Shown one piece after another: positions 57-51,075 of a stretch of 64,000 nucleotides of DNA. The stretch is from NCBI GenBank assembly GCA_009859145.1, contig VRVR01000004.1, positions 108,677 through 172,676 of the forward strand, written 5' to 3'. This DNA comes from Andalucia godoyi And28. Lineage: Eukaryota > Protista > Jakobida. The notes under the pieces were generated by a model. The model saw only the letters and a program-made list of their open reading frames with translations, was not told where the DNA came from and did not search any database. The position numbers were made by a program, and so were the translations under genes. The number at the start of each line of letters is the position of its first letter. The first letter of the stretch is position 1.

Positions 57-1418
57 ATGTCGCTTTCAAAGGAATCTGCGATGGCGACTCGTCGAATAAA
101 AGCGATATTGTCGCACATGAATCCTGTTCCTTTGGCACGCGGGGTAATTGCGACGGCGACGAGTACGGCATCGATCCCGAGTTTATCGACGATTGCGGGA
201 TCTGAAGTTACGCCGCTTGTGCTTGCTTTGTCCGATGTAATGTACTCCAAACACTTGTATGCTCAAAAGGACAAAGAAGGAAAAGAAGGATCGAAAAGGC
301 GGCTTTTCTTCCCGCTTTCCAACAAGGCGTTTCGCACCGTCATGACTGCTTTGTATGGGTGGGCGCGATGGGAATCCGCGAAAAATCCATCTGAGCGGCT
401 TCGAGCGTTTTGCTCGCTTCTGATTTCGCTTATTTCGCTTATTCCGGTGTATCTGAATGGCGGTGCGGGTAGCACAGAATTCAGAATCCGGCTGATGGGA
501 ATGCTGAACACGTGGACTTGGATCGGCCAGCAACTGCTTTCGCTGCCTTCTGCTTCGATCGACAACTGGCTCCTGAAAGTATTCGTCAAGATGCAAAGGA
601 TGCTGCATCTTGGTCCAAATTCTGCCAAGCTGTTTGGAATGCACAGCAGGATCTTCAACAGCGACAAGAAGAATCAGAAGAGTACTGGAAATCGGATGCA
701 TCCATTCAACCTGATTGAAATTCTAATCTCGATTTCCATCATTGTAACGTTTTCTGGGCTTGTTGGAGTGGTATACCCCAAACTGCTGGACGACTCGAAA
801 GAATCCAATGCACAGCTGGACTTGCATACAATTGCTTCGGCTCTTGTTATTTTCTATTCCCGAACATCGCGGTACCCGCTGTCTCTGGACGATTTGGCCA
901 GATCTGGCGATTTGGCTGCGGTTCCTAGGGATCCGTGGGACAACGACTACAAGTACATCCCCCACGTTGATCTCTTGGCGCTCTCCAGAGCCCTCAAGTC
1001 GAGGACGAGCGGAGCCGTCACAACATCGACAGTTGGTGCGAATGCGGGTGCAGATGGGAAGGCACATCTTGGGACGCTGGAGTATGGGATCGAGTGTCTG
1101 CGACGAGCTGCATCCGTGCTCTCCGAGCTTCAGTCGGTTTCATCGACGAATGCAAAAGCAGGTGGTCTGGATCTGATGGGCATCCTCGTCGCCTGCACTG
1201 ATGGACCTGTCATATGCTGTTTGGGAAAACGCGGTCCACTTTTTCTTGGCGCCGGTTCGTCTGGTGGATCTTCGCCGGGTTCAATTGGGAACATTCCACC
1301 TGCAAAGAAAAAAGAAGTCGCTGGTCTGATCCAGGAAATTCGAAACACTGCCGCACAAGCCGGGCGGCGAGAAGCACTCGATGCTATTGAGTCTGTTCGA
1401 CAAGTCTTGTCGTCATAA
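57..1418 (+). CDS. gspG: GspG-like pseudopilin of the mitochondrial T2SS-derived system, with long N- and C-terminal extensions
   Basis: Internal type IV pilin N-terminal motif HP|FNLIEILISISIIVTFSGLVGVVYPKLL (from nt 705), then A..DLHTIASAL..F....RYP...L..L and PRDPWDNDYKY, matching the bacterial GspG PKDPWGNDYQY motif. About 216 aa precede the pilin helix. Confidence 0.88.
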   Translation: MSLSKESAMATRRIKAILSHMNPVPLARGVIATATSTASIPSLSTIAGSEVTPLVLALSDVMYSKHLYAQKDKEGKEGSKRRLFFPLSNKAFRTVMTALYGWARWESAKNPSERLRAFCSLLISLISLIPVYLNGGAGSTEFRIRLMGMLNTWTWIGQQLLSLPSASIDNWLLKVFVKMQRMLHLGPNSAKLFGMHSRIFNSDKKNQKSTGNRMHPFNLIEILISISIIVTFSGLVGVVYPKLLDDSKESNAQLDLHTIASALVIFYSRTSRYPLSLDDLARSGDLAAVPRDPWDNDYKYIPHVDLLALSRALKSRTSGAVTTSTVGANAGADGKAHLGTLEYGIECLRRAASVLSELQSVSSTNAKAGGLDLMGILVACTDGPVICCLGKRGPLFLGAGSSGGSSPGSIGNIPPAKKKEVAGLIQEIRNTAAQAGRREALDAIESVRQVLSS

Positions 1419-3272: not shown

Positions 3273-4670
3273 TCACGTGGTGAACGAAAGAGAGAGAGTG
3301 AGCAGCACGGGTGTCTTGAGCGGATTTCCGACCCAAATGCGCGCCTTGGCCTGCTGCAAGTCAAAGACCACTGTGCACACTGTCGACACCGTATCGGGCG
3401 TCTTGGAAGACCGGAAGATAGGGTACTCGGAATCCTGCGTATCCGACAAAATGTTGAGCATGTCATACTCGGTCTTCGGGGGCGAGAACTGCAAAGCCCG
3501 AGCAAGTCTGTGAATGGACGACGGGTCGTCATATTGCGCAATCTCCTTGTTGTACAAGTACATATTAAAATGGAAAACGGCGTCTCCGGTGCATTTTGTG
3601 ACCGTCAGCGCATGCTCCATGGGAATAACTTCAAGATTGATTGTCTGCAGTTGTCGGACGAAGCCAACATTGTACGCAAAGCCGAGTGCTGGCTTGATTC
3701 CGTATGCAAGACCGCTCGCCTTGTTCGACACATCTGCAAACGATTTTGAAGAGAGCAGATCGCGCTGCACCCAGTACCGCGCTGCGCCTCGTGCAAACAC
3801 GGCTTTCGGAAACACTGCATCGGATGTCATAACAAGCCCGTACCGATTGAACGCCCAAGCATTTCCTGCAACGAAGCCGGGATACACATACGCTGTAAAC
3901 TCGTCCGTTTCGAGCAAGTACGCCGTCTCCATCACAACGGCACGCGTGTCTTCATTATGTCCGATAAATCCAGAAAGGAGAATGTCAGAACAGTCCTTTA
4001 GAAAATCCGGAATCGCATCATTCGTCCCGATTTTCTCATTTGCCAATTCCACATCATCATCGTCGTCGTCGACGTCATCATCGCCGCTATCACCACTATC
4101 ATCCGCATCCATATCATCCACACGGGCTGAAAGAGCATCCTTCTCATCAAGCAAGTCCACACCCTCCAAAGCATGTTCGGGGGTTTCGACACGACTTAAA
4201 CGAGACTGCAAAATGGCGTCTTGAGCAACTTTGAAAGCGACTTCCTGTTCACGCAACTTCATTAATTCAGACTCTGAAATATTGGCCTGCATGACCGCGT
4301 ACAGTTCTTGTTGGAAAGACAGCATCAGCAAGTCAGCAAAGGACACATTTGCGCCAGTTGCGATTCCCCGAAGTTCGTCATAGACACTCGGAAGAACACC
4401 CTGGTTTGCTTCCAACAGAAACTCAAGCGCAAGTTTCCCTGTCCCAGCGGCCGTGAACGGTCTCAGATCATTGTTCAAAAAGGCATCTGCAGCCAGAAAC
4501 TCCACAATGTCAGAGCCAAACGACTGGCCTTGCACAAATCCAAGATCATACGCAGAAATATCCCCGGCAACTCGCAATCTGCGCAGAGTCGCGTACGCAT
4601 CCACGGAGGACGTGCCAAAAAGAAGCACAAGCCCCAACAAAACAAGAACCGCAAATACGCTCCTCTCCAT
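3273..4670 (-). CDS. Secreted C45-family Ntn hydrolase (acyl-CoA:6-APA acyltransferase/tan-like)
   Basis: Signal peptide (MERSVFAVLVLLGLVLLFG), G..YDLGFVQG, autocleavage site D|CSD and GHNED, G.AWAFN.YGL, D.SSIHRLAR, TVCTVVFDL. Confidence 0.85.
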   Translation of the reverse strand: MERSVFAVLVLLGLVLLFGTSSVDAYATLRRLRVAGDISAYDLGFVQGQSFGSDIVEFLAADAFLNNDLRPFTAAGTGKLALEFLLEANQGVLPSVYDELRGIATGANVSFADLLMLSFQQELYAVMQANISESELMKLREQEVAFKVAQDAILQSRLSRVETPEHALEGVDLLDEKDALSARVDDMDADDSGDSGDDDVDDDDDDVELANEKIGTNDAIPDFLKDCSDILLSGFIGHNEDTRAVVMETAYLLETDEFTAYVYPGFVAGNAWAFNRYGLVMTSDAVFPKAVFARGAARYWVQRDLLSSKSFADVSNKASGLAYGIKPALGFAYNVGFVRQLQTINLEVIPMEHALTVTKCTGDAVFHFNMYLYNKEIAQYDDPSSIHRLARALQFSPPKTEYDMLNILSDTQDSEYPIFRSSKTPDTVSTVCTVVFDLQQAKARIWVGNPLKTPVLLTLSLSFTT

Positions 4671-4951
4671 TCTCTGCGTTACACGAATGCTTGTTAGAAC
4701 ACAGAATATCACAAAACAAAACAAAACAACCCAAAAACAAAAAACAGAAAACAGAAAACAGAAAAATAAGAGTGAATTCGTGCGCTTTGCGGCACACTCG
4801 GTTCATTCGGCGGGCTGTAAAATGAAATATATTTAAATTTAAAAAACTACCCGCACAAGCCTTTTGTTGTTTTACGACAGGCAGTTTCATTTCTTAGGTA
4901 AGAAAGGGAAGGTCGTGCAGTTGACGCCGAACGCAAAAAGAAAAGGGCTTA

Positions 4952-5746
4952 CTACAATAAATACAGGTTTGATCGTTCGACGACATCGAACAAAAACAGA
5001 GTTTTCAGCAGCTCCTGAGCTTGTGCAAAGACAGCAGGAGTCTTTTCATCGGTGGCTGCAGAGTGTCCGTCTCGAGTGATTCTTGCTTCCACAGGATGCA
5101 TATGTTGCAGCTCGCAGATGGCCTTGATCTGGACTCCGTTTCGAAATGCAATGTCCCACAGATCATACGAGTTTGACACTTCACACTTTTCAATTTCACC
5201 GCTCGCTGCTCTTGCCTTCAACTCAAGGACTTGCTCTCGGCGGCTCACGAATGCCACGACATGTTGACTGATTCTCTGAAGCACGCTTTGCAGATCCGTC
5301 TTTGCAAACTGCGCTACAATCTGCTCCACTGGAACAAAAAACGGGAGTGAGTGCTTTGAGATTTTGAAATGCTGCGAACTTCCAGTTGCATCGTACTCGA
5401 GAAACAGAAAATATGCTTCGAAAAACTTGTTCTTGTAAAACGTGTCGAACTGGACCGCAATCGTATCCTGGTCAATTGCAAAAAACGTGATTCCTGACAT
5501 TCGATACGCAGCAAAGGACTCCGAGAGTACGCGCTTCGAAACACGGTCTGGAAAATTCGCAATAATGGCAGCCTTCATTTCCTCTGAAGCGGCCGGAACT
5601 GTGCTGACGCTGGCCGAAGATCCGGAAACGGGCTGCGTGCCTTGGCGCGACTGAGAGAAGAACGTCGCGAATGGAACCGATGCGTGCACAAGCGCATTGA
5701 AATGGGCTGTATTTCTCTGAGAAACCAGCGCTTCGCCTATTTTCCG

Positions 5747-5782
<36 letters not shown>

Positions 5783-6068
5783 GGAACACACGCGCACGGT
5801 GCAATTATTAATACGAATGATTCTTCGGTCGTTCAATGAAAATGGAAGAAAATCCAAGGGGGAAAAAAAAGATGGAGACGGAGAAAGAAGCATGGAAAAA
5901 TTCTCACATACATTGCTGTTGAAGAAAAGAAAGCTGTTCGAGATTTCGCTCGTTTGTGTGTTGGACAGAAGAAAGTATTCGAGACTGCTCGATTAGATCG
6001 TCCAGCTGGACGAGAATGCGCGATTGCAGTCTTGCCGAAGCTTGCTGAACCGCAAACGAACTACTCAT
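4952..6068 (-). CDS. CENPO: Kinetochore protein CENP-O/Mcm21-like; 2 exons (6068-5912, 5736-4952)
   Basis: GITFF..D...AVQFDTF....FEAYFL...ISKHSLPFFVPVEQI...LQRISQHVVAFVSRREQV is the CENP-O RWD signature. A GTATGT...AG intron (5911-5737) joins an upstream ATG exon in frame. Confidence 0.75.
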
Positions 6069-19222: not shown

Positions 19223-19630
19223 TCACCATATTTCTTTTCTTATTTTTCCTTGTTTTCCTTATTTTCTCTTCTTGCATTTTTGTATTCTATTGTTTCTTCA
19301 GCTTTGCAATGTCCATATTTTCTTCTCGCCGCTGTTCTCGCGGTATTTTATTTGGCACAAGATGCGCGACTGCCTTCTTGTTTCCCTTCCCTTCCTCCTT
19401 TCCTGTAAAAATAATATTAAGTTGTTACCGCTTGGTTAAACACTGATCAACAATAATAACGAGTTTCAAAACTGCGCATGGAAACCGGGGGGGGTCTAAT
19501 TGCAGTCTCAAAATTGCCAACTGGAGACGTTATGGCGAAGCTGCTCCCTTTTTCATGAAAATGGTTCAGCGCTTCCCATAACAAGTATGTTGTTGGGTGT
19601 TTTCAGTCCCACGCAAACACCTCCCTCTTA

Positions 19631-21209
19631 TTACGAGGAGGATGAAAAGGGGCTTGGGTGTTGGCAGACTCCAATGGAGTCTCCAATACACTCCACACCC
19701 AAGATCGCAACGTTTCTCGCACCATGCTGGTCACGAGGTTGCGAATACGTGCATCCCGCGTGGGGACACTGTGACGTCTTCACTCTGTTTCTGGCACATC
19801 TTCTGGGTGTTCATTGGCGGGAGCAGGATATGATCCGCATTCTGGCACACCGCCTTGGCAATGTGTACATGTCCATCATGTTGCATGTTCTGAATGCGGT
19901 GCGAAATGTTGCGCATCTTACGCCGGGCATTCCGTCTTGCCGTTTTTCGACATGCGAGTCGTCTCGGTGGCGCGTTTCGATTGCAATTTCTGATAGCGTT
20001 TCTGGGGTTTGATCAGCGTCCAGGCTCGCCTCGGAGAACCCATATTCCTTGTAATTCCCACAGCCATCATAAACAGTCTGGAAGACACGGCCTCCGCCAT
20101 CGCAGCTGTTCATGACAACCATGTCTCCGGTTTTCGCCTTGGGTGGTGCCATGGATCGCGCGACTGGGACAATCGGAAAAGCATCGTCCTTGGACATAGG
20201 AAATGGAACACGTGCGCAGGCCATTGAAAACCGAGCCGTTACTGCCACCTTGGGGTTTCTCACGCTCCATCTCACGTAGCCGTCGAATTTCACGATCCGC
20301 CTTCCTTCCTCATTTCCACAATTTGATGGTGCTTCCGGGAATGAAAGTGGACCAGAAAGCAGCACCTTCCTCGACCGACAATTGGACGGGAGGTTTTCCA
20401 CCATTCTTGGGAACCTTGAAGCTGCGATGATCGGAATGCTTGTCTCGCGGTTTCACGACGAAGCATTTCGGACAACGTCTCGTGTTCTTCGTCAGCCTGG
20501 AGTCGGGGTTCGGAAAAACATGTCGATCCATCTTTCGGGATCTTGCGGGGACATTGCGTTTCTGGTAAAGGAAGACGCAGTTGTTATACGCATCGTCCCA
20601 GAGATCGAACATCTGATGAAGTTTCAACTTCTGTTCTTCGGTGGGTCCGCAGGCGAATCTTGAATGCGCACATAGCCAAACCGGGAGGTAGCTTCTTCTC
20701 GTCATCCCGCTCACATGCCTCCGATTTGGGGTTCGACTTAGACGCCTGAGGCTTCCCCCGGAGGCTCGTCTTCTGTTTTCCACGGAAACGGTTCTTCTCG
20801 TGGATTTTCTGTGTCTTGGGTTTTGGGACTTTGCTGAAGCAGCCGCGGGTTTAGGTTTCGTCTTCGCCTCGGGCTTCTTTTTTGGGAGCGGGTTTCTTTT
20901 GTCTCCCTAGGAACAATCTTAAGTTTCGCCAAGTTGGCTTGGATCGTGGCAGGATCGAACAAACGCACCGTCGGCAGACTTCCCGGGGTCGAGTTGATTG
21001 TGCGCACGCTGACCTAGCTGTGTTCCAGCTTTCCGGAACGAACGACTGGGTGGTCATGTCCCGCAGGCATCTGCTGCGCAAGCAACCTTTTGCGCTCAAT
21101 GTCTACCCAAGGCACCGTTCGAGCGACGTCGGAAGGAGGGTCTGGGAGTCTTCCTAAGGCGCTTCTTGTCGGGTTTGCGACCTCCTGGAAGGTTGCGTTT
21201 CCGAGTCAT
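19631..21209 (-). pseudogene. Fanzor2 (TnpB-derived RNA-guided nuclease) pseudogene with frameshifts, stops and an internal deletion
   Basis: Collinear fragments across frames: basic start MTRKR...KKRLRK; AFKIRLR/(+1)PTEEQKLKLHQMFDLWDDAYNNCVFLY (TnpB N-terminal HTH); VVMNSCDGGGRVFQTVYDG (RuvC-I); RIQNMQHDGHVHIAKAVCQNADHILLPPMNTQKM; KTSQCPHAGC...PRDQHGARNVAIL (Zn finger half and RuvC-III). Confidence 0.85.
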
Positions 21210-44274: not shown

Positions 44275-45663
44275 CTACACACTGGATCCGCCGCCAGTCA
44301 ATATTAGAGCGGCCGACAGTGCGTACGCAATGATGAGAAACGTGACCGAGAGCACATCGACAGTGCGAGTCATCTTCAGCTTTTTCTTTCGGTTGTTGCG
44401 GATTTTCGAGTATGTTTCATATGAAGATACAAAATCCTTCTTGGCCTCATCAACTTGGTTGATCGGTGGCAATCGCATTTCCGATCCTCTGTTTCGTGCC
44501 TGCTCCTTTTGAGGGTCGTCTTTAAGCAGGGGTGAGTCCGGTGCAACTCTTCTCATCGGCTCGACACTCATGCCGCGAGGTGTCAACCCTGGCAACGGAT
44601 TCTTTTCCGTGCTCGGATGGCCTCTCTCGGACATAGGGCCGTGTGTTTCTGCATTTTTCGCTTCCGAAATCTGCAACACCATTTCCGCGTGCTCGTCTCT
44701 CTTCTCGTGTGTGTAGAACACTAGATAGTTGACTGCGTGTACAGCCATACACGCAAACACGGTCAGATACGAGAGTTGCATGAACGAGTCGATCCGAGTG
44801 CTGTATGCAACCTTTGGAAGATCCTGCGACGCTATAAACAAGTAAGATATAATTGCCAAGAATACCGTAATCGAGCCCATCATTCGATCGGCCTCGTCAA
44901 CTTCAAGCGCAAAGCACAGGAAGCCCATCATCACCAGCACCACGACACCAATGACGAATTTGGACAAGTAGTATCCAGGATCTCTCTTCACGACAATTGC
45001 ATATCGCAATCGGGAATATGAAGCCTTGAAAAGAGTGTAGTAATAATCTAATTCATCGGCTGCATTGCGCTGAATCGTCCAACTCTGCACTTCAAATCCA
45101 GGAGGAAGCACACCCGCCGGGGGCAAGTTTGCCGGCAACACGACAAACTTCATTTGGGAACTTGTCCAAATCGCCGACTCTACAATGATGAAAATAGTCT
45201 GTGTGTCAAATGGAAAGTCACGCAGATTCATGTCCACCAGAAAATCGCCCTTGAACCGGAAGTCCCCCTGGACCCATGGACCCACTGTGTTTGGAGCATT
45301 CGGATCCCCCGCAGAATAACCAAGCAGATCATCGGGCTGAGAAGCATGCACTTGATACGGCGAATCAATCGTCTGCTCCGGAGTCCCCACAACGTTAATC
45401 ATCTCTATGTAAGGATTGAAGTGCGTCACCGGGTCGTATTCCAGCGTCTGATTATCAATCGTCGGATCATTCCAAAACACCTCCAAATAAAAATCAGCAT
45501 TAAACGTCTGCTCAACTCCATTGATTTTCTGTAGCATGTTGAAATACACTTTTGTGTACACGTTCAGTGTCTCATAAGGCGGAGCAACCTGTGAAACAAC
45601 CCTCAGCATCCCAAAGCACCCAATCCACACAAACGCCGTTATCAAAAAATACTTGAATTCCAT
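44275..45663 (-). CDS. Cys-less pentameric ligand-gated ion channel
   Basis: N-terminal hydrophobic leader, INGVEQTFNADFYLEVFW.DP, NLRDFPFDTQ, YSRLRYAIVVKRDPGYY, four TM helices with a long M3-M4 loop. Confidence 0.9.
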   Translation of the reverse strand: MEFKYFLITAFVWIGCFGMLRVVSQVAPPYETLNVYTKVYFNMLQKINGVEQTFNADFYLEVFWNDPTIDNQTLEYDPVTHFNPYIEMINVVGTPEQTIDSPYQVHASQPDDLLGYSAGDPNAPNTVGPWVQGDFRFKGDFLVDMNLRDFPFDTQTIFIIVESAIWTSSQMKFVVLPANLPPAGVLPPGFEVQSWTIQRNAADELDYYYTLFKASYSRLRYAIVVKRDPGYYLSKFVIGVVVLVMMGFLCFALEVDEADRMMGSITVFLAIISYLFIASQDLPKVAYSTRIDSFMQLSYLTVFACMAVHAVNYLVFYTHEKRDEHAEMVLQISEAKNAETHGPMSERGHPSTEKNPLPGLTPRGMSVEPMRRVAPDSPLLKDDPQKEQARNRGSEMRLPPINQVDEAKKDFVSSYETYSKIRNNRKKKLKMTRTVDVLSVTFLIIAYALSAALILTGGGSSV

Positions 45664-47442: not shown

Positions 47443-50400
47443 CTATCCGCCGAGCTGAACGGTGCATGTGAACCCGTAGTAGTCTGTGGAGTCGAAGGCA
47501 CTGTATCCTGCAACTGTTAGTATGATATTGAGGACCCCCATCGCTCCAGGGACCGATGGGGCAGTGTAGATTACTTGCGTGTAAATTGGATAGAACGCTG
47601 TTCCTACTTTGACCCCGGTGCTGTAATCGACACTGAACGTGTTCGTTCGCACAATGCAGGTTGCATACATGACTCCCAACTTCGCGATGAGTGTGCCGTG
47701 AAGGAGGACACCTGTTTTGGTTGTTGTGCACTCGTAGTTGGGGCCATTGGCAGCGCACGACGGAGCACCCTTTTCAATTTGGATCACCACAGGCGGGTAC
47801 ACGCAAGTCGCATCCGACAATACAGTTGTTGAACCCGTGCAGAGAGTTCCCAGCAGGGTTGTTTTCGTCTTTGTGCCGCCTATCACAAACGTCTTCGATG
47901 TCTCGCTGCCAATGTTGAGCGTTGTTGTGGATGCTCCGATGTCAATGGTTCCTGTGGAGTCCACTTTGAGATACGTTCCTGAAAGACGAAGACCGCTCTT
48001 GCTTGCCACGCTGTATTCCGAACCGGTCTCACCCAGGGTTACGCCCGTACCGCGAAGCCAGGTGGTGACGTTTGTACCACCGATTCGCACCGAGTTGCTG
48101 TCACTACCGATGTAAACTGACCCAGCAAGCGAGCCATTCACAGATCCCAGTCCGGCCTGCAATACAAGATCGCCACCACTGGAGTTCAGGTCTCCTCGCC
48201 CAGCTGAAATTACCAACGAAACGCCTGTTGCATTGGAGTTTGGGTCCGCGTTGGAAGCAAAAATAGTCACAGTTCCTGTGGAGTTTCCCAGCTGAACTTT
48301 GGGGGATCGGAGCCACACTTTTCCAGACGACGTCGTCGGTTGCAGCGTAATATCTGATCCACTGAAAATCGACACGGTTGATGTGGTTGTCATTGTCACA
48401 CTGCCCGTGTTCGTCGTCAACGAAGAGCCAGATAGTATGAGCGAGCTCGAGCCTGCGATGGCAGAAACGAAGGAAGGACCTGATAAAAAGACACTGCCTG
48501 CACTGGAGGAAACCGTGACGTCTCCGCTGGATGTCAGGGCCGCTGAAGAAGTGCCGCTGAAGAATGCCGAGGACGCTTGGCCCCGCAGTGCGCCGGAGGA
48601 CGACAGCAGAATATTCTTCGTTGCCACGAGCTGCACTGAATCTTGCGCAGTCACTGTGGAGTTCGCAGAGGACTGCACGTCCACAGTTGACGAACTCACG
48701 GCAATTACAGCATGCGCACTAAGACGGACGTTCGCCGCGGTCGACTTCACAGTGACGTCTCCTGCCGAAAATACAGCTGAAGATGATGTTCCAGAGAGAA
48801 CAACTGCTTGGGCATTTCCGTGAATGGTACCGGATGTTTGAAAATCGATTCCTTGCGAGCCATTAACGTTGACAAAAGAGCTGGAACTGATGGAGGCGTT
48901 CGACATTGACTGCAGTGAGAGCGAGGTGCTGAAGGCCTTGAAATTAGCACCAGTGAGAAGCATGCTACTTGCCGCGCCGACGATGACATCCGAGGGAGAC
49001 GTCATGCTGATTCCAGCAGCGGACAATGCCGAGGAAGAACCAAATGCAGATGCATGGATGCCAGTGGTCGAGACATCAAAATGCTCAGCGCCAACAGAAA
49101 GTTTGATGGTCGAGGCTGATGTTAGTGAAATAGATGAGCCCGATGTCATGTACGTATCCCTAGTAGAGGTCGAAGTCAGATCTCTTGCTGCCCCAAGAGA
49201 GACATCTTGCGAAGCTGCTAGTGAAATATCTTTTGCAACTGTATTCGCATTTCCACTGGGAGCAGAAACCTTCACGGAATCACTGGACTGCAGTGTCATC
49301 GCACCAGCAGATGTGATTTTGACGGATCCCGCTGACGTCGTTGCATCGATGTCTCCGACGATTGTGGCACTCAGAGTCTGCGAAGTAAATCCGATGGCGC
49401 TCCCGGGAGACGACACAGACACGCCGCCGGAAGCAGATAGAGCAATCGATGCTGAAGAGATGGTTGTTGGGCCGGAGGAAGAAACAACCAACACTGCACT
49501 TGATGCAGAAAGCTTTCCGGACGCCGACAAGGTCATGTCCGTCGCTGCCACGTTCATTGTTCCGCCTACCGAAAACAAAGTATCCTTTGCAACAGCAAAC
49601 TTTGCGTCGTTTGCGGCGACACGGACTTCGTTGCTCGGCGTTGATAGGCTTACAGATCCACTCGCAGAAATTTGTATGCTCGACTTCGAGACCAGCGAGA
49701 CTGTGCCGTCCGATGAGATGTCTGTTTTCCCACCGCTCGATACGATCGTATCTCGGCCTGTCACAAAGCTGGTGTCCAGCGCTGCTGTTGAAGCAACCGA
49801 TCCAGCAGAAGACACAACGGTCAGGTCTCCGGAAGTCGTCGACAGCGCAATGCCTGTCGCAGCGGAAACCGCAACTGCCGAACTTCCTGCAATCATGCTG
49901 ATTGCATTTCCGGTAAGAAGGACACCTCCGGCAGCGGCTTCAGCAGGCATCGAAAATCCCGACTGGGTGGCAGCTTGAATGGTGACTCCTCCTCCAAGCA
50001 CTCCTATGTTTCCTAAAGTTCCAGAGCCCGAGTCAAACCCCCCAAGCTTAAGTGTGGAAGCTGTGGAAGCTGAGAGTACACCTCCTGCAGCAGTGATTCC
50101 ACTGAAAGACGATTGTGCCGAGTTCACGACAAACTTGTTGGAGTCAGCCTTCATGATGACGCTACCTGCAGAGCTCAGTGCTTGCACTCCCGCGCTTCCG
50201 GTTGTTCCCGAGAGTTGAATGAAATCCGCTCCGGCAGAATCCCAAAGTCGCATCGAACCCGTTTCCGAAATTGAGAATACCGAATGCGCGGTCAGTGGTT
50301 GATGGAAAGTCGAACCTGCGTAAACAGAAAGTAGATGCGGCCCCCCTCCCGCGGCGTTGCCAATGACCGTCGATTTCCACAATTCGGTGTAGTTTGTGAC

Positions 50401-51075
50401 ACGCAGTTTTCCGAATTCGAAAGTCGGGACATCAATAATGTTCGCCTCGAGCTTCATGAGCTGAACTATGTCGACGGTGCCGTCTGCAGTGATAATCTTA
50501 TTGGTGAACACCGTGAACAGCACATACGAGAGCAAAAATGCGTTGGAAAGAGATACGAGGACAAGGAATGCAATGATTGCAAGCATCTTGTTTCTTTGCT
50601 TGAGCAGTCGACGTTCAATGTTTTCTCGGAATCGAAGAACTTCCTTCTCTGTCAGCGAAGTTGGAGTTTCTTTTTCTGCGTCAAAGGACTCGGGAGCACC
50701 CGTTGCTGCCAAGATCTTTCGAGGAAATGCAATCTTTTTCGGAAGCTTTGGCGGCGGTTTCAACGGCGACGTCCCTGGCACACGCGTTTCATCCTGTTTG
50801 GAAATCAGAGAAATTGCGGAGCCCTTTCTGAAAGTGCTCCCTTTTGGAAAAATAAAGCTATTTTGTGAGCTGATGGATGCTGCAGACGCGAACAATTCCG
50901 CTGCAGATCCCTCTGAATTTCGCAGAAGAGCTGTTGGCGTACCACTGAATGACTGGACGTCCTTGAACCGTGGAGACGCACGAAAGCTTGCGATGCGGGG
51001 AGGCTGTGGGGCATTCTGTGGAGTTGAGGGGATTTCGACGGGGGGAGCCTCTTCATCTGTGTCTTGAGTGGACAT
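47443..51075 (-). CDS. Large type II membrane protein with an ~900-aa Ser/Ala/Gly/Thr-rich beta-repeat ectodomain
   Basis: 1210-aa ORF: ~160-aa disordered N-terminus, one TM helix (MLAIIAFLVLVSLSNAFLLSYVLF), then ~8-residue periodic strands (SISLTSAS TIKLSVG, SVKITSAG AMTLQSSD). Confidence 0.8.
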   Translation of the reverse strand: MSTQDTDEEAPPVEIPSTPQNAPQPPRIASFRASPRFKDVQSFSGTPTALLRNSEGSAAELFASAASISSQNSFIFPKGSTFRKGSAISLISKQDETRVPGTSPLKPPPKLPKKIAFPRKILAATGAPESFDAEKETPTSLTEKEVLRFRENIERRLLKQRNKMLAIIAFLVLVSLSNAFLLSYVLFTVFTNKIITADGTVDIVQLMKLEANIIDVPTFEFGKLRVTNYTELWKSTVIGNAAGGGPHLLSVYAGSTFHQPLTAHSVFSISETGSMRLWDSAGADFIQLSGTTGSAGVQALSSAGSVIMKADSNKFVVNSAQSSFSGITAAGGVLSASTASTLKLGGFDSGSGTLGNIGVLGGGVTIQAATQSGFSMPAEAAAGGVLLTGNAISMIAGSSAVAVSAATGIALSTTSGDLTVVSSAGSVASTAALDTSFVTGRDTIVSSGGKTDISSDGTVSLVSKSSIQISASGSVSLSTPSNEVRVAANDAKFAVAKDTLFSVGGTMNVAATDMTLSASGKLSASSAVLVVSSSGPTTISSASIALSASGGVSVSSPGSAIGFTSQTLSATIVGDIDATTSAGSVKITSAGAMTLQSSDSVKVSAPSGNANTVAKDISLAASQDVSLGAARDLTSTSTRDTYMTSGSSISLTSASTIKLSVGAEHFDVSTTGIHASAFGSSSALSAAGISMTSPSDVIVGAASSMLLTGANFKAFSTSLSLQSMSNASISSSSFVNVNGSQGIDFQTSGTIHGNAQAVVLSGTSSSAVFSAGDVTVKSTAANVRLSAHAVIAVSSSTVDVQSSANSTVTAQDSVQLVATKNILLSSSGALRGQASSAFFSGTSSAALTSSGDVTVSSSAGSVFLSGPSFVSAIAGSSSLILSGSSLTTNTGSVTMTTTSTVSIFSGSDITLQPTTSSGKVWLRSPKVQLGNSTGTVTIFASNADPNSNATGVSLVISAGRGDLNSSGGDLVLQAGLGSVNGSLAGSVYIGSDSNSVRIGGTNVTTWLRGTGVTLGETGSEYSVASKSGLRLSGTYLKVDSTGTIDIGASTTTLNIGSETSKTFVIGGTKTKTTLLGTLCTGSTTVLSDATCVYPPVVIQIEKGAPSCAANGPNYECTTTKTGVLLHGTLIAKLGVMYATCIVRTNTFSVDYSTGVKVGTAFYPIYTQVIYTAPSVPGAMGVLNIILTVAGYSAFDSTDYYGFTCTVQLGG

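Follow-up and report, generated by a model that had tools for sequence, protein, structure and literature searches.

GspG pseudopilin gene of the jakobid Andalucia godoyi and a PTS2-like N-terminal nonapeptide shared by ATPase-derived, platform and pseudopilin subunits of the mitochondrial type II secretion system

The GspG gene and its relatives

The stretch of DNA analysed here, referred to as the window, comprises 64,000 nt of contig VRVR01000004.1 (positions 108,677 to 172,676, forward strand) from the jakobid Andalucia godoyi And28, the genome of which was described by Gray et al. (2020). At 57-1418 (+) it bears an ATG-initiated, uninterrupted open reading frame (ORF) of 453 codons plus stop with no intron, annotated here as the complete coding sequence of the GspG precursor, GspG being the major pseudopilin in type II secretion systems (T2SS). 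Homologues of the T2SS core occur in the mitochondria of some heteroloboseans, jakobids, malawimonads and hemimastigotes (Horvathova et al., 2021), and this mitochondrial system is abbreviated below as miT2SS. The first 399 residues of the translation are identical (399/399) to the printed sequence of KAF0853042.1, GspG of A. godoyi, and it is to these 399 residues that the comparison applies. Horvathova et al. (2021; Nat Commun 12:2947; PMC8134430) list this accession as A. godoyi GspG in their Supplementary Data 1. Length and architecture agree as well, nothing differs, and the gene is a rediscovery of a published one; being a catalogued miT2SS component, it adds nothing new on its own. A first-pass annotation made from the letters alone had delimited a 453-aa protein at 57-1418 and assigned it to the nucleus-encoded GspG of the mitochondrial T2SS-derived system. 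Coordinates and length were reproduced, and the identity with the published protein bears out the assignment and also fixes the host lineage, which the gene had been said to constrain, as the jakobid A. godoyi. Immediately 5' of the gene, at 17-44, is a (GT)14 microsatellite, about 12 nt ahead of the ATG at 57.

Only one relative was returned by a word-indexed database search, namely P0002, a 344-aa protein with 39% identity from a JGI metagenome (loci L001, 1605-2639, +, and L002, 918-1952, +; JGI 3300042934 and SRR35185192). It is the closest relative of A. godoyi GspG, with 58% identity in the mature part. The P0002 contig also holds SYF2 and CENP-O genes, and because this CENP-O is 45% identical to the CENP-O of the window (4952-5893, -), which is located two genes downstream of GspG, P0002 appears to come from an uncultured jakobid similar to Andalucia, in which the microsynteny is conserved. 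With the mature part only (aa 216-453, without the extension) as query, exhaustive searching of 1.84 billion representatives by phmmer yielded 335 proteins at E <= 1e-3. The first 25-30 matches were long eukaryote-type proteins, in which the pilin helix begins 50-275 residues from the N-terminus, and the later ones were classic bacterial pseudopilins of 110-170 aa. The reciprocal search proposed by the first-pass annotation hence ranked eukaryote-type GspGs first and bacterial pseudopilins next, not non-pilin proteins, and judged by sequence scores the match of the mature protein to pseudopilins is far beyond chance.

Over the mature region, eukaryotic GspGs are 27-58% identical to the A. godoyi protein. 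Like the mitochondrial GspG1 and GspG2 of heteroloboseans, malawimonads, Reclinomonas and hemimastigotes, it combines a long N-terminal extension, a basic anchor, the pilin helix alpha1 with Glu at +5, a DPW..Y.Y loop and a conserved C-terminal part, but it alone has Pro at -1 and three Gly/Ser/Ala-rich inserts, and with its 216-aa extension it is among the longest members.

Structure of the mature pseudopilin

The residues Phe217-Asn-Leu-Ile-Glu, from nt 705 onward, open a hydrophobic stretch of 24 residues (aa 217-240; 705-776, +), which represents the hydrophobic N-terminal half of alpha1 with Phe at +1 and Glu at +5 (codon 717-719), as read from the translation and from a helix at mature residues 3-54 in the AlphaFold2 (AF2) model. 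The stretch demonstrably homologous to bacterial GspG extends over 705-977 (+; mature residues 1-91) and includes alpha1, the alpha-beta loop, the first strand and the DPWDNDYKY signature at 930-956; the pseudopilin core recognized earlier at 705-965 (aa 217-303) agrees with it. Pfam model T2SSG (PF08334) matched aa 244-301 with 22.2 bits, barely over its gathering score of 21 and along profile positions 6-77 of 108, while the best NCBIfam match was TIGR01710 (GspG) at aa 217-300 with 27.5 bits, far under its equivalog cut-off of 88.85. PF07963 (N_methyl) had no match in A. godoyi GspG, whereas the bacterial matches do carry it. Against PDB sequences, phmmer gave weak matches to PulG and EpsG, aligned along the helix and the DPW..Y.Y loop. 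Profile-profile comparison by hhalign of 12 eukaryotic mature sequences with 50 bacterial pseudopilins resulted in a probability of 99.9% (E = 1.9e-32), with mature residues 1-91 aligned to bacterial columns 14-104 of 143. On these profiles, homology to bacterial GspG is certain and is limited to mature residues 1-91.

The AF2 model of the mature protein (237 residues; mean predicted local distance difference test, pLDDT, of 82.4; predicted template modelling score, pTM, of 0.74) consists of the helix at 3-54, a loop helix at 61-67, a short strand at 83-85, four helices at 90-166, a hairpin at 169-182 and two terminal helices. When mature residues 1-102 were modelled separately (pLDDT 85), the same helix (3-54) and loop helix (61-67) were obtained, and Foldseek ranked a type IVb pilin, Vibrio cholerae EpsG, a V. 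vulnificus pseudopilin, type IV pilins and PulG on top, with probabilities of 0.97-1.00 and root-mean-square deviations of 2.2-2.7 A. The pilin fold, that is the long alpha1 helix with the alpha-beta loop, is present in the predicted structure of these N-terminal 102 residues.

The remaining part of the protein (aa 308-453; 978-1415, +) is eukaryote-specific. Family alignment and AF2 place in it helices, the conserved hairpin, the two terminal helices and the three A. godoyi-only inserts. The hairpin (aa 385-398; nt 1209-1250) contains the invariant Gly390 (mature Gly174), and mature Pro157 is nearly invariant. This part could be aligned with 11 other family members down to the C-terminus, so the eukaryote-specific "novel domain" is present; neither Foldseek nor profile-profile comparison found a bacterial counterpart of it. 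We also considered the hairpin (PVICCLGKRGP; ...PxVFSxG...PIF in the family) as a displaced bacterial beta2-beta3 element, and the best local match in a comparison with a nearly full-length bacterial profile did fall on the SxGxDG columns, but it covered 11 columns and was not significant (E = 0.18). The Gly/Ser/Ala-rich inserts lie at approximately 1011-1079, 1137-1163 and 1245-1283 and are absent from all other family members; in the AF2 model, two of these inserts fall in segments of low confidence (mature residues 105-119 and 186-192).

According to Horvathova et al. (2021), a "complete pseudopilin domain" precedes a novel domain that is separate from it. Profile and structure comparisons did not reproduce a complete pseudopilin domain, and in our reading the pilin helix, the alpha-beta loop and the first strand have been retained and the remainder remodelled. 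Compared with bacterial GspG, PulG and EpsG (PF08334, TIGR01710; PDB 5WDA, 4LW9, 3GN9, 3FU1), A. godoyi GspG shares alpha1, Phe at +1, Glu at +5, the alpha-beta loop and the signature loop. In contrast, it has no short class III leader, no Gly at -1 and no detectable beta2-beta3 region or calcium site, it possesses about 145 additional C-terminal residues, it is encoded by a nuclear gene and not in a gsp operon, and no GspO partner is reported for it.

N-terminal extension and cleavage site

Ahead of the pilin helix lies an extension of 216 residues (aa 1-216; 57-704, +) that is absent from bacterial GspG. By composition it is presequence-like, rich in Ser and Thr and with a net charge of +18, and a role in mitochondrial targeting was assigned to it by Horvathova et al. 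(2021). It contains an extra hydrophobic segment at aa 115-137 (399-467, +), LRAFCSLLISLISLIPVYLNGGA, and the TMHMM column of the same study gives three transmembrane domains for A. godoyi GspG. The extension ends in a basic "polar anchor" (aa 200-216; 654-704, +; net charge +3), which closes with Arg(-4)-Met-His(-2)-Pro(-1) and has no Gly at -1. The site reads ...NRMHP/FNLIEILISISIIVTFSGLVGVVY, the slash marking the pilin site, with Phe217 as +1 at nt 705. Both Pro at -1 (HP/FNLIE) and the retained Glu5, as pointed out in the first-pass annotation, were confirmed in the translation.

The residue at -1 was surveyed in 17 eukaryotic GspGs, comprising 15 from PMC8134430, the window protein and P0002. 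Glu at +5 is found in 17/17 and +1 is Phe (14) or Leu (3), while -1 is His in seven, Arg, Asn and Tyr in two each, and Pro, Gln, Ala and Gly in one each. His occupies -1 or -2 in 14/17, and 14/17 have a basic residue within -2 to -4. No Gly at -1 was seen among the additional eukaryote-type phmmer matches. As a control, the only residues at -1 in 79 bacterial-type matches from the same search were Gly (64) and Ala (15), in agreement with the properties of prepilin peptidases, which require Gly at -1 and tolerate Ala poorly, as known from mutagenesis of Pseudomonas pilin. Since 16/17 eukaryotic proteins do without Gly, its loss, correctly noted in the first-pass annotation, is a trait of the family and not of the A. 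godoyi gene. The sole eukaryotic Gly at -1 belongs to the hemimastigote Spironema cf. multiciliatum (RVHG/FSLIE) and may be an ancestral state or a reversion. What is unique to A. godoyi among the 17 is Pro at -1, between His and Phe at +1; P0002 has ...KDH/F. Relative to class III (prepilin) substrates of GspO/PilD, A. godoyi GspG is alike in Phe at +1 and Glu at +5 (FNLIE, aa 217-221) but differs in having a 216-aa leader with Pro at -1 instead of a short basic leader with Gly at -1.

The loss of Gly fits the reported absence of GspO, as no GspO was found in any of these eukaryotes and the mitochondrial processing peptidase (MPP) or Gcp16 was proposed in its place (Horvathova et al., 2021). 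That paper never mentions the glycine and calls the maturation features conserved, and cleavage "following the His residue" was already proposed in a 2023 review. MPP is a possible protease for the extension, since basic residues are common at -2 or -3 among these proteins, although the Arg of A. godoyi stands at -4; Gcp16 is possible as well. That processing departs from the bacterial mode, as the first-pass annotation suggested, is a reasonable inference already discussed by Horvathova et al. (2021). The loss of Gly in nearly all eukaryotic lineages, with Phe at +1 and Glu at +5 kept, sharpens the question of which protease matures these proteins.

A PTS2-like nonapeptide shared among miT2SS subunits

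Near the start of the extension lies a nonapeptide, RIKAILSHM (aa 13-21), followed by Asn-Pro (93-125, +), that resembles the peroxisomal targeting signal type 2 (PTS2) and is also found in GspE, GspEL, GspEN2A, GspEN2B and GspF. The PTS2 motif is described as [RK]-[LVI]-x5-[HQ]-[LAF], has a hydrophobic residue at position 5 and is normally located among the first 40 residues, and RIx5HM and RLx5HV are regarded as probable functional variants (PMC7710942). The A. godoyi nonapeptide matches this motif apart from Met at position 9, i.e., it is the variant RIx5HM.

We surveyed 63 members of the six families (GspE, GspEL, GspEN2A, GspEN2B, GspF and GspG) from jakobids, malawimonads, heteroloboseans and hemimastigotes, together with a comparison set of 64 members from eleven families (GspD, GspDL, GspDN1-3, Gcp1, 2, 7, 8, 14 and 15); Gcp3, Gcp4, most of Gcp5 and Gcp10-12 are left out of the survey. 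The canonical motif with hydrophobic position 5 was present within the first 40 residues of 28/63 proteins, against a mean of 0.3 in shuffled sequences. With the listed variants included, the count rose to 49/63 within the first 40 residues and 56/63 within the first 100, and the same three counts in the comparison families were 1, 2 and 4 of 64. By family, the variant motif occurred in 8/8 GspE, 9/10 GspEL, 8/10 GspEN2A, 8/10 GspEN2B, 8/8 GspF and 15/17 GspG proteins, and a relaxed pattern of the tag in 16/17 eukaryotic GspGs. The strict Petriv consensus matched 20/63 of the tagged-family proteins, five of the 17 GspGs among them; in 60 of the surveyed sequences, the part beyond residue 100 (about 12,700 residues) gave no match to it. 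Seven eukaryote-type GspGs that came from the exhaustive search and lie outside the table of PMC8134430 carry the tag at positions 3-31, even though the query had no extension. As a further control, the first 100 residues of the other 124 ATG-initiated ORFs of the window were scanned, giving three matches to the core pattern, none to the strict consensus and none to the extended form ending in x-Pro, so that GspG is the only one of 125 ORFs with this extended form. The tag marks the ATPase-derived, platform and pseudopilin subunits, which are expected to face or cross the inner membrane, and all secretin-derived subunits, as well as six Gcp families, are without it.

Outside these families, Gcp16, a putative metallopeptidase, matches the strict consensus at its extreme N-terminus in Malawimonas, Gefionella and Spironema and a relaxed one in Reclinomonas. 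The Gcp16 proteins of two heteroloboseans have internal matches, and those of A. godoyi and Naegleria were scanned and have no tag. The candidacy of Gcp16 as the protease for the extension gains some support because part of the Gcp16 proteins share the tag, with the reservation that A. godoyi Gcp16 does not. Naegleria Gcp6 also carries it.

A description of the tag was found neither in the text and supplements of PMC8134430, nor in the 2023 review or other papers that mention the miT2SS, a search that left aside the alignment images of Supplementary Fig. 4, where the authors may have seen it. In PMC8134430, Gcp1-3 are identified as paralogues of Pex7 and PTS2 is named once, as the Pex7 ligand; a PTS1 predictor was run there, but no PTS2 scan. 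The shared tag may be new, in contrast to the gene itself and the loss of Gly at -1, which are known or typical of the family.

GspDN2 has an internal helix, [RK]-L-V-A-F-L-[RK]-H-F-D-x-P-P, similar to the tag and ends in PTS1-like tripeptides. Gcp13 contains a conserved internal segment, ...R-[LI]-H-x-[IV]-[IV]-H-H-I-L-P-K-P.... The termini of Gcp1, Gcp13 and A. godoyi Gcp16 are -SKL, -SRL or similar.

Proposed role of the protein and its tag

We consider it very probable that this nuclear gene codes for the GspG precursor of the jakobid miT2SS; GspG, the system's major pseudopilin, would be anchored by its pilin helix, cleaved and assembled into a short pseudopilus. The basic extension of 216 residues would carry the precursor into the mitochondria, and the PTS2-like nonapeptide at its start would act as a shared targeting or recognition tag. 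Helix alpha1 would anchor GspG in the inner membrane such that the extension faces the matrix and the globular part lies in the intermembrane space, and a protease other than a GspO-type prepilin peptidase would then remove the extension at or beside Phe217. GspF and GspE would polymerise the resulting mature subunit, which has about 237 aa and carries Phe1 and Glu5, to form a short pseudopilus below the GspD pore. Mitochondrial localisation has been shown for the orthologues of Naegleria gruberi and Gefionella okellyi, and among orthologues from these genera self-interaction and peptides only downstream of the pilin +1 site have been reported (Horvathova et al., 2021).

Several points weigh against this interpretation. 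The experimental support concerns orthologues only and not the A. godoyi protein, for which the predictors in PMC8134430 were equivocal (TargetP 2.0 "OTHER", MitoFates "no"). The bacterial beta2-beta3 and calcium-binding SxGxDGxxGxxxD segment stayed unaligned in the profile-profile comparison and is not detectable, and for this reason the ability to form a filament is only putative. Of five AF2 models of the mature protein two were confident, the whole mature model had no significant Foldseek neighbour in the PDB (best E = 0.13, helical-repeat noise), and the Foldseek E-values of the 102-residue piece (0.06-2; 0.06-0.3 for the top pilins and pseudopilins) are non-significant alone. Finally, the real cleavage site may not be Pro/Phe, because Pro at P1 is awkward for many endopeptidases.

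In an unlikely, though not negligible, alternative, the A. godoyi precursor is cut elsewhere than at the pilin -1/+1 position, for instance by MPP after Arg-Met (leaving His-Pro-Phe...) or after His (leaving Pro-Phe...). Glu would then not be at +5 and the protein might be a membrane-anchored stalk and not a polymerising pseudopilin. The unique Pro at -1, missing from its nearest relative, is consistent with such a cut, as are Arg at -4, which suits an R-2 cut two residues upstream, the cleavage after His expected by the 2023 review and the lack of a GspO homologue in these eukaryotes (Horvathova et al., 2021). However, the conservation of a hydrophobic +1 and of Glu at +5 throughout the 17 proteins is sensible only if the N-terminus is made at +1, and the N. 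gruberi peptides were all downstream of the pilin site (Horvathova et al., 2021). Far less probable is that the gene encodes a relative of type IV pilins instead of a T2SS pseudopilin. A type IVb pilin heads the Foldseek list of the N-terminal piece, NCBIfam gave a weak match to Myxococcus PilA (15.5 bits), and some eukaryotic Gsp proteins are not unambiguously classifiable (Horvathova et al., 2021), but the GspG-specific models PF08334 and TIGR01710 score best, the DPW-x-x-Y-x-Y signature loop is GspG-like, and homologues of GspD, GspE and GspF co-occur in the same species (Horvathova et al., 2021). As for contamination by bacterial DNA, a chimeric assembly or a dead gene gained by horizontal transfer, nothing but the bacterial ancestry speaks for them. 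The ORF is intact, it lies on a 510-kb contig in gene-dense eukaryotic DNA of uniform composition, and four eukaryotic lineages possess orthologues that share its eukaryote-specific extensions; this explanation is effectively refuted, with hardly any probability left to it.

Regarding the tag, we infer that it is most likely a common targeting or recognition tag for inner-membrane and matrix-side parts, because GspG shares it with all ATPase-derived and platform subunits. The conservative reading is an unusually conserved presequence helix, since Tom20 binds a hydrophobic-x-x-hydrophobic-hydrophobic pattern in presequences and tag positions 2, 5 and 6 also fit this pattern. We tentatively suggest, as a possibility that remains rather doubtful, that the tag is a dedicated label of the matrix and inner-membrane side of the miT2SS, and that its readers would be the three Pex7-like WD40 proteins Gcp1-3, which co-occur with this system. 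Its similarity to the peroxisomal PTS2/Pex7 system lies in the N-terminal nonapeptide, the hydrophobic position 5, the location usually within 40 residues of the start and the Pex7 paralogues Gcp1-3 in the miT2SS set. The two are unlike in that the tested tagged proteins are mitochondrial, that the tag is often followed by x-Pro and that two of the tagged families are membrane proteins.

Could the tag be a true peroxisomal signal, by which Pex7 or its paralogues direct GspG and its fellow tagged subunits, in part or entirely, to peroxisomes, so that they are not exclusively mitochondrial? The strict matches in 20/63 proteins and the canonical ones in 28/63 within 40 residues point in this direction, as do the putative peroxisomal fraction of Horvathova et al. 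(2021), which includes GspEL along with several Gcp proteins, and the PTS1-like ends of Gcp1, Gcp13 and others. Nonetheless, antibodies located NgGspG1 and NgGspEN2A in mitochondria, and GspE of N. gruberi and of G. okellyi, with tags that fit the strict consensus, was mitochondrial in yeast (Horvathova et al., 2021). Moreover, GspG and GspF are membrane proteins and not normal PTS2 cargo, which makes peroxisomal residence improbable. If the tag is instead a label read by Gcp1-3, these proteins gain a concrete ligand and the "peroxisome link" of the published gene set is explained. The tag and the three Pex7 paralogues turn this so far vague link into a direct question of binding, and for finding additional components or cargo in these genomes the tag is a simple sequence marker as well.

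Genomic context of the window

The window is gene-dense and even in base composition (GC content 0.43-0.54). Its large ORFs contain eukaryotic domains, such as an NMNAT-like cytidylyltransferase, CENP-O, kelch, RCC1, protein kinase, ARD and ankyrin/TPR, and further ones include Prp18, a Cys-loop channel, LRR, SRP68, an AAA ATPase and WD40. Because the neighbouring genes are eukaryotic, a bacterial chimera, already deemed unlikely in the first-pass annotation, is excluded. None of eight other A. godoyi Gsp proteins was found by tblastn to be encoded in the 64-kb window, and no Peptidase_A24 domain was detected among its large ORFs. A tblastn match of AgGspEL at 19599-19754 (E = 0.01) was discarded as due to chance, the stretch being non-coding in appearance and without the tag. 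Physical clustering of miT2SS genes was considered too, as the accession numbers of GspF, Gcp13, GspDN1, Gcp6 and GspG lie within 42 of each other, yet none of the eight other Gsp genes queried occurs in the 64 kb and the idea was dropped. The genome paper reports about 864 curated mitochondrial genes and that most A. godoyi genes have no introns (Gray et al., 2020). Close accession numbers do not mean close genes, since the accessions span about 820 numbers in total, which fits a record annotated for these ~864 mitochondrial genes alone.

Three further ORFs, all on the reverse strand, deserve mention. The 483-aa ORF at 3273-4724 (-) has a domain like acyl-CoA:6-aminopenicillanic-acid acyltransferase (AAT) and a long acidic, Asp-rich insert. 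The 1210-aa ORF at 47443-51075 (-) has a sole Pfam match, just below threshold (29.4 vs 30.7 bits), to DUF2345, which Pfam gives as uncharacterized and conserved in bacteria. The 462-aa ORF at 44275-45663 (-) matches both domains of Cys-loop ligand-gated ion channels, Neur_chan_LBD (37.8 bits) and Neur_chan_memb (43.3 bits), a family unusual in a jakobid.

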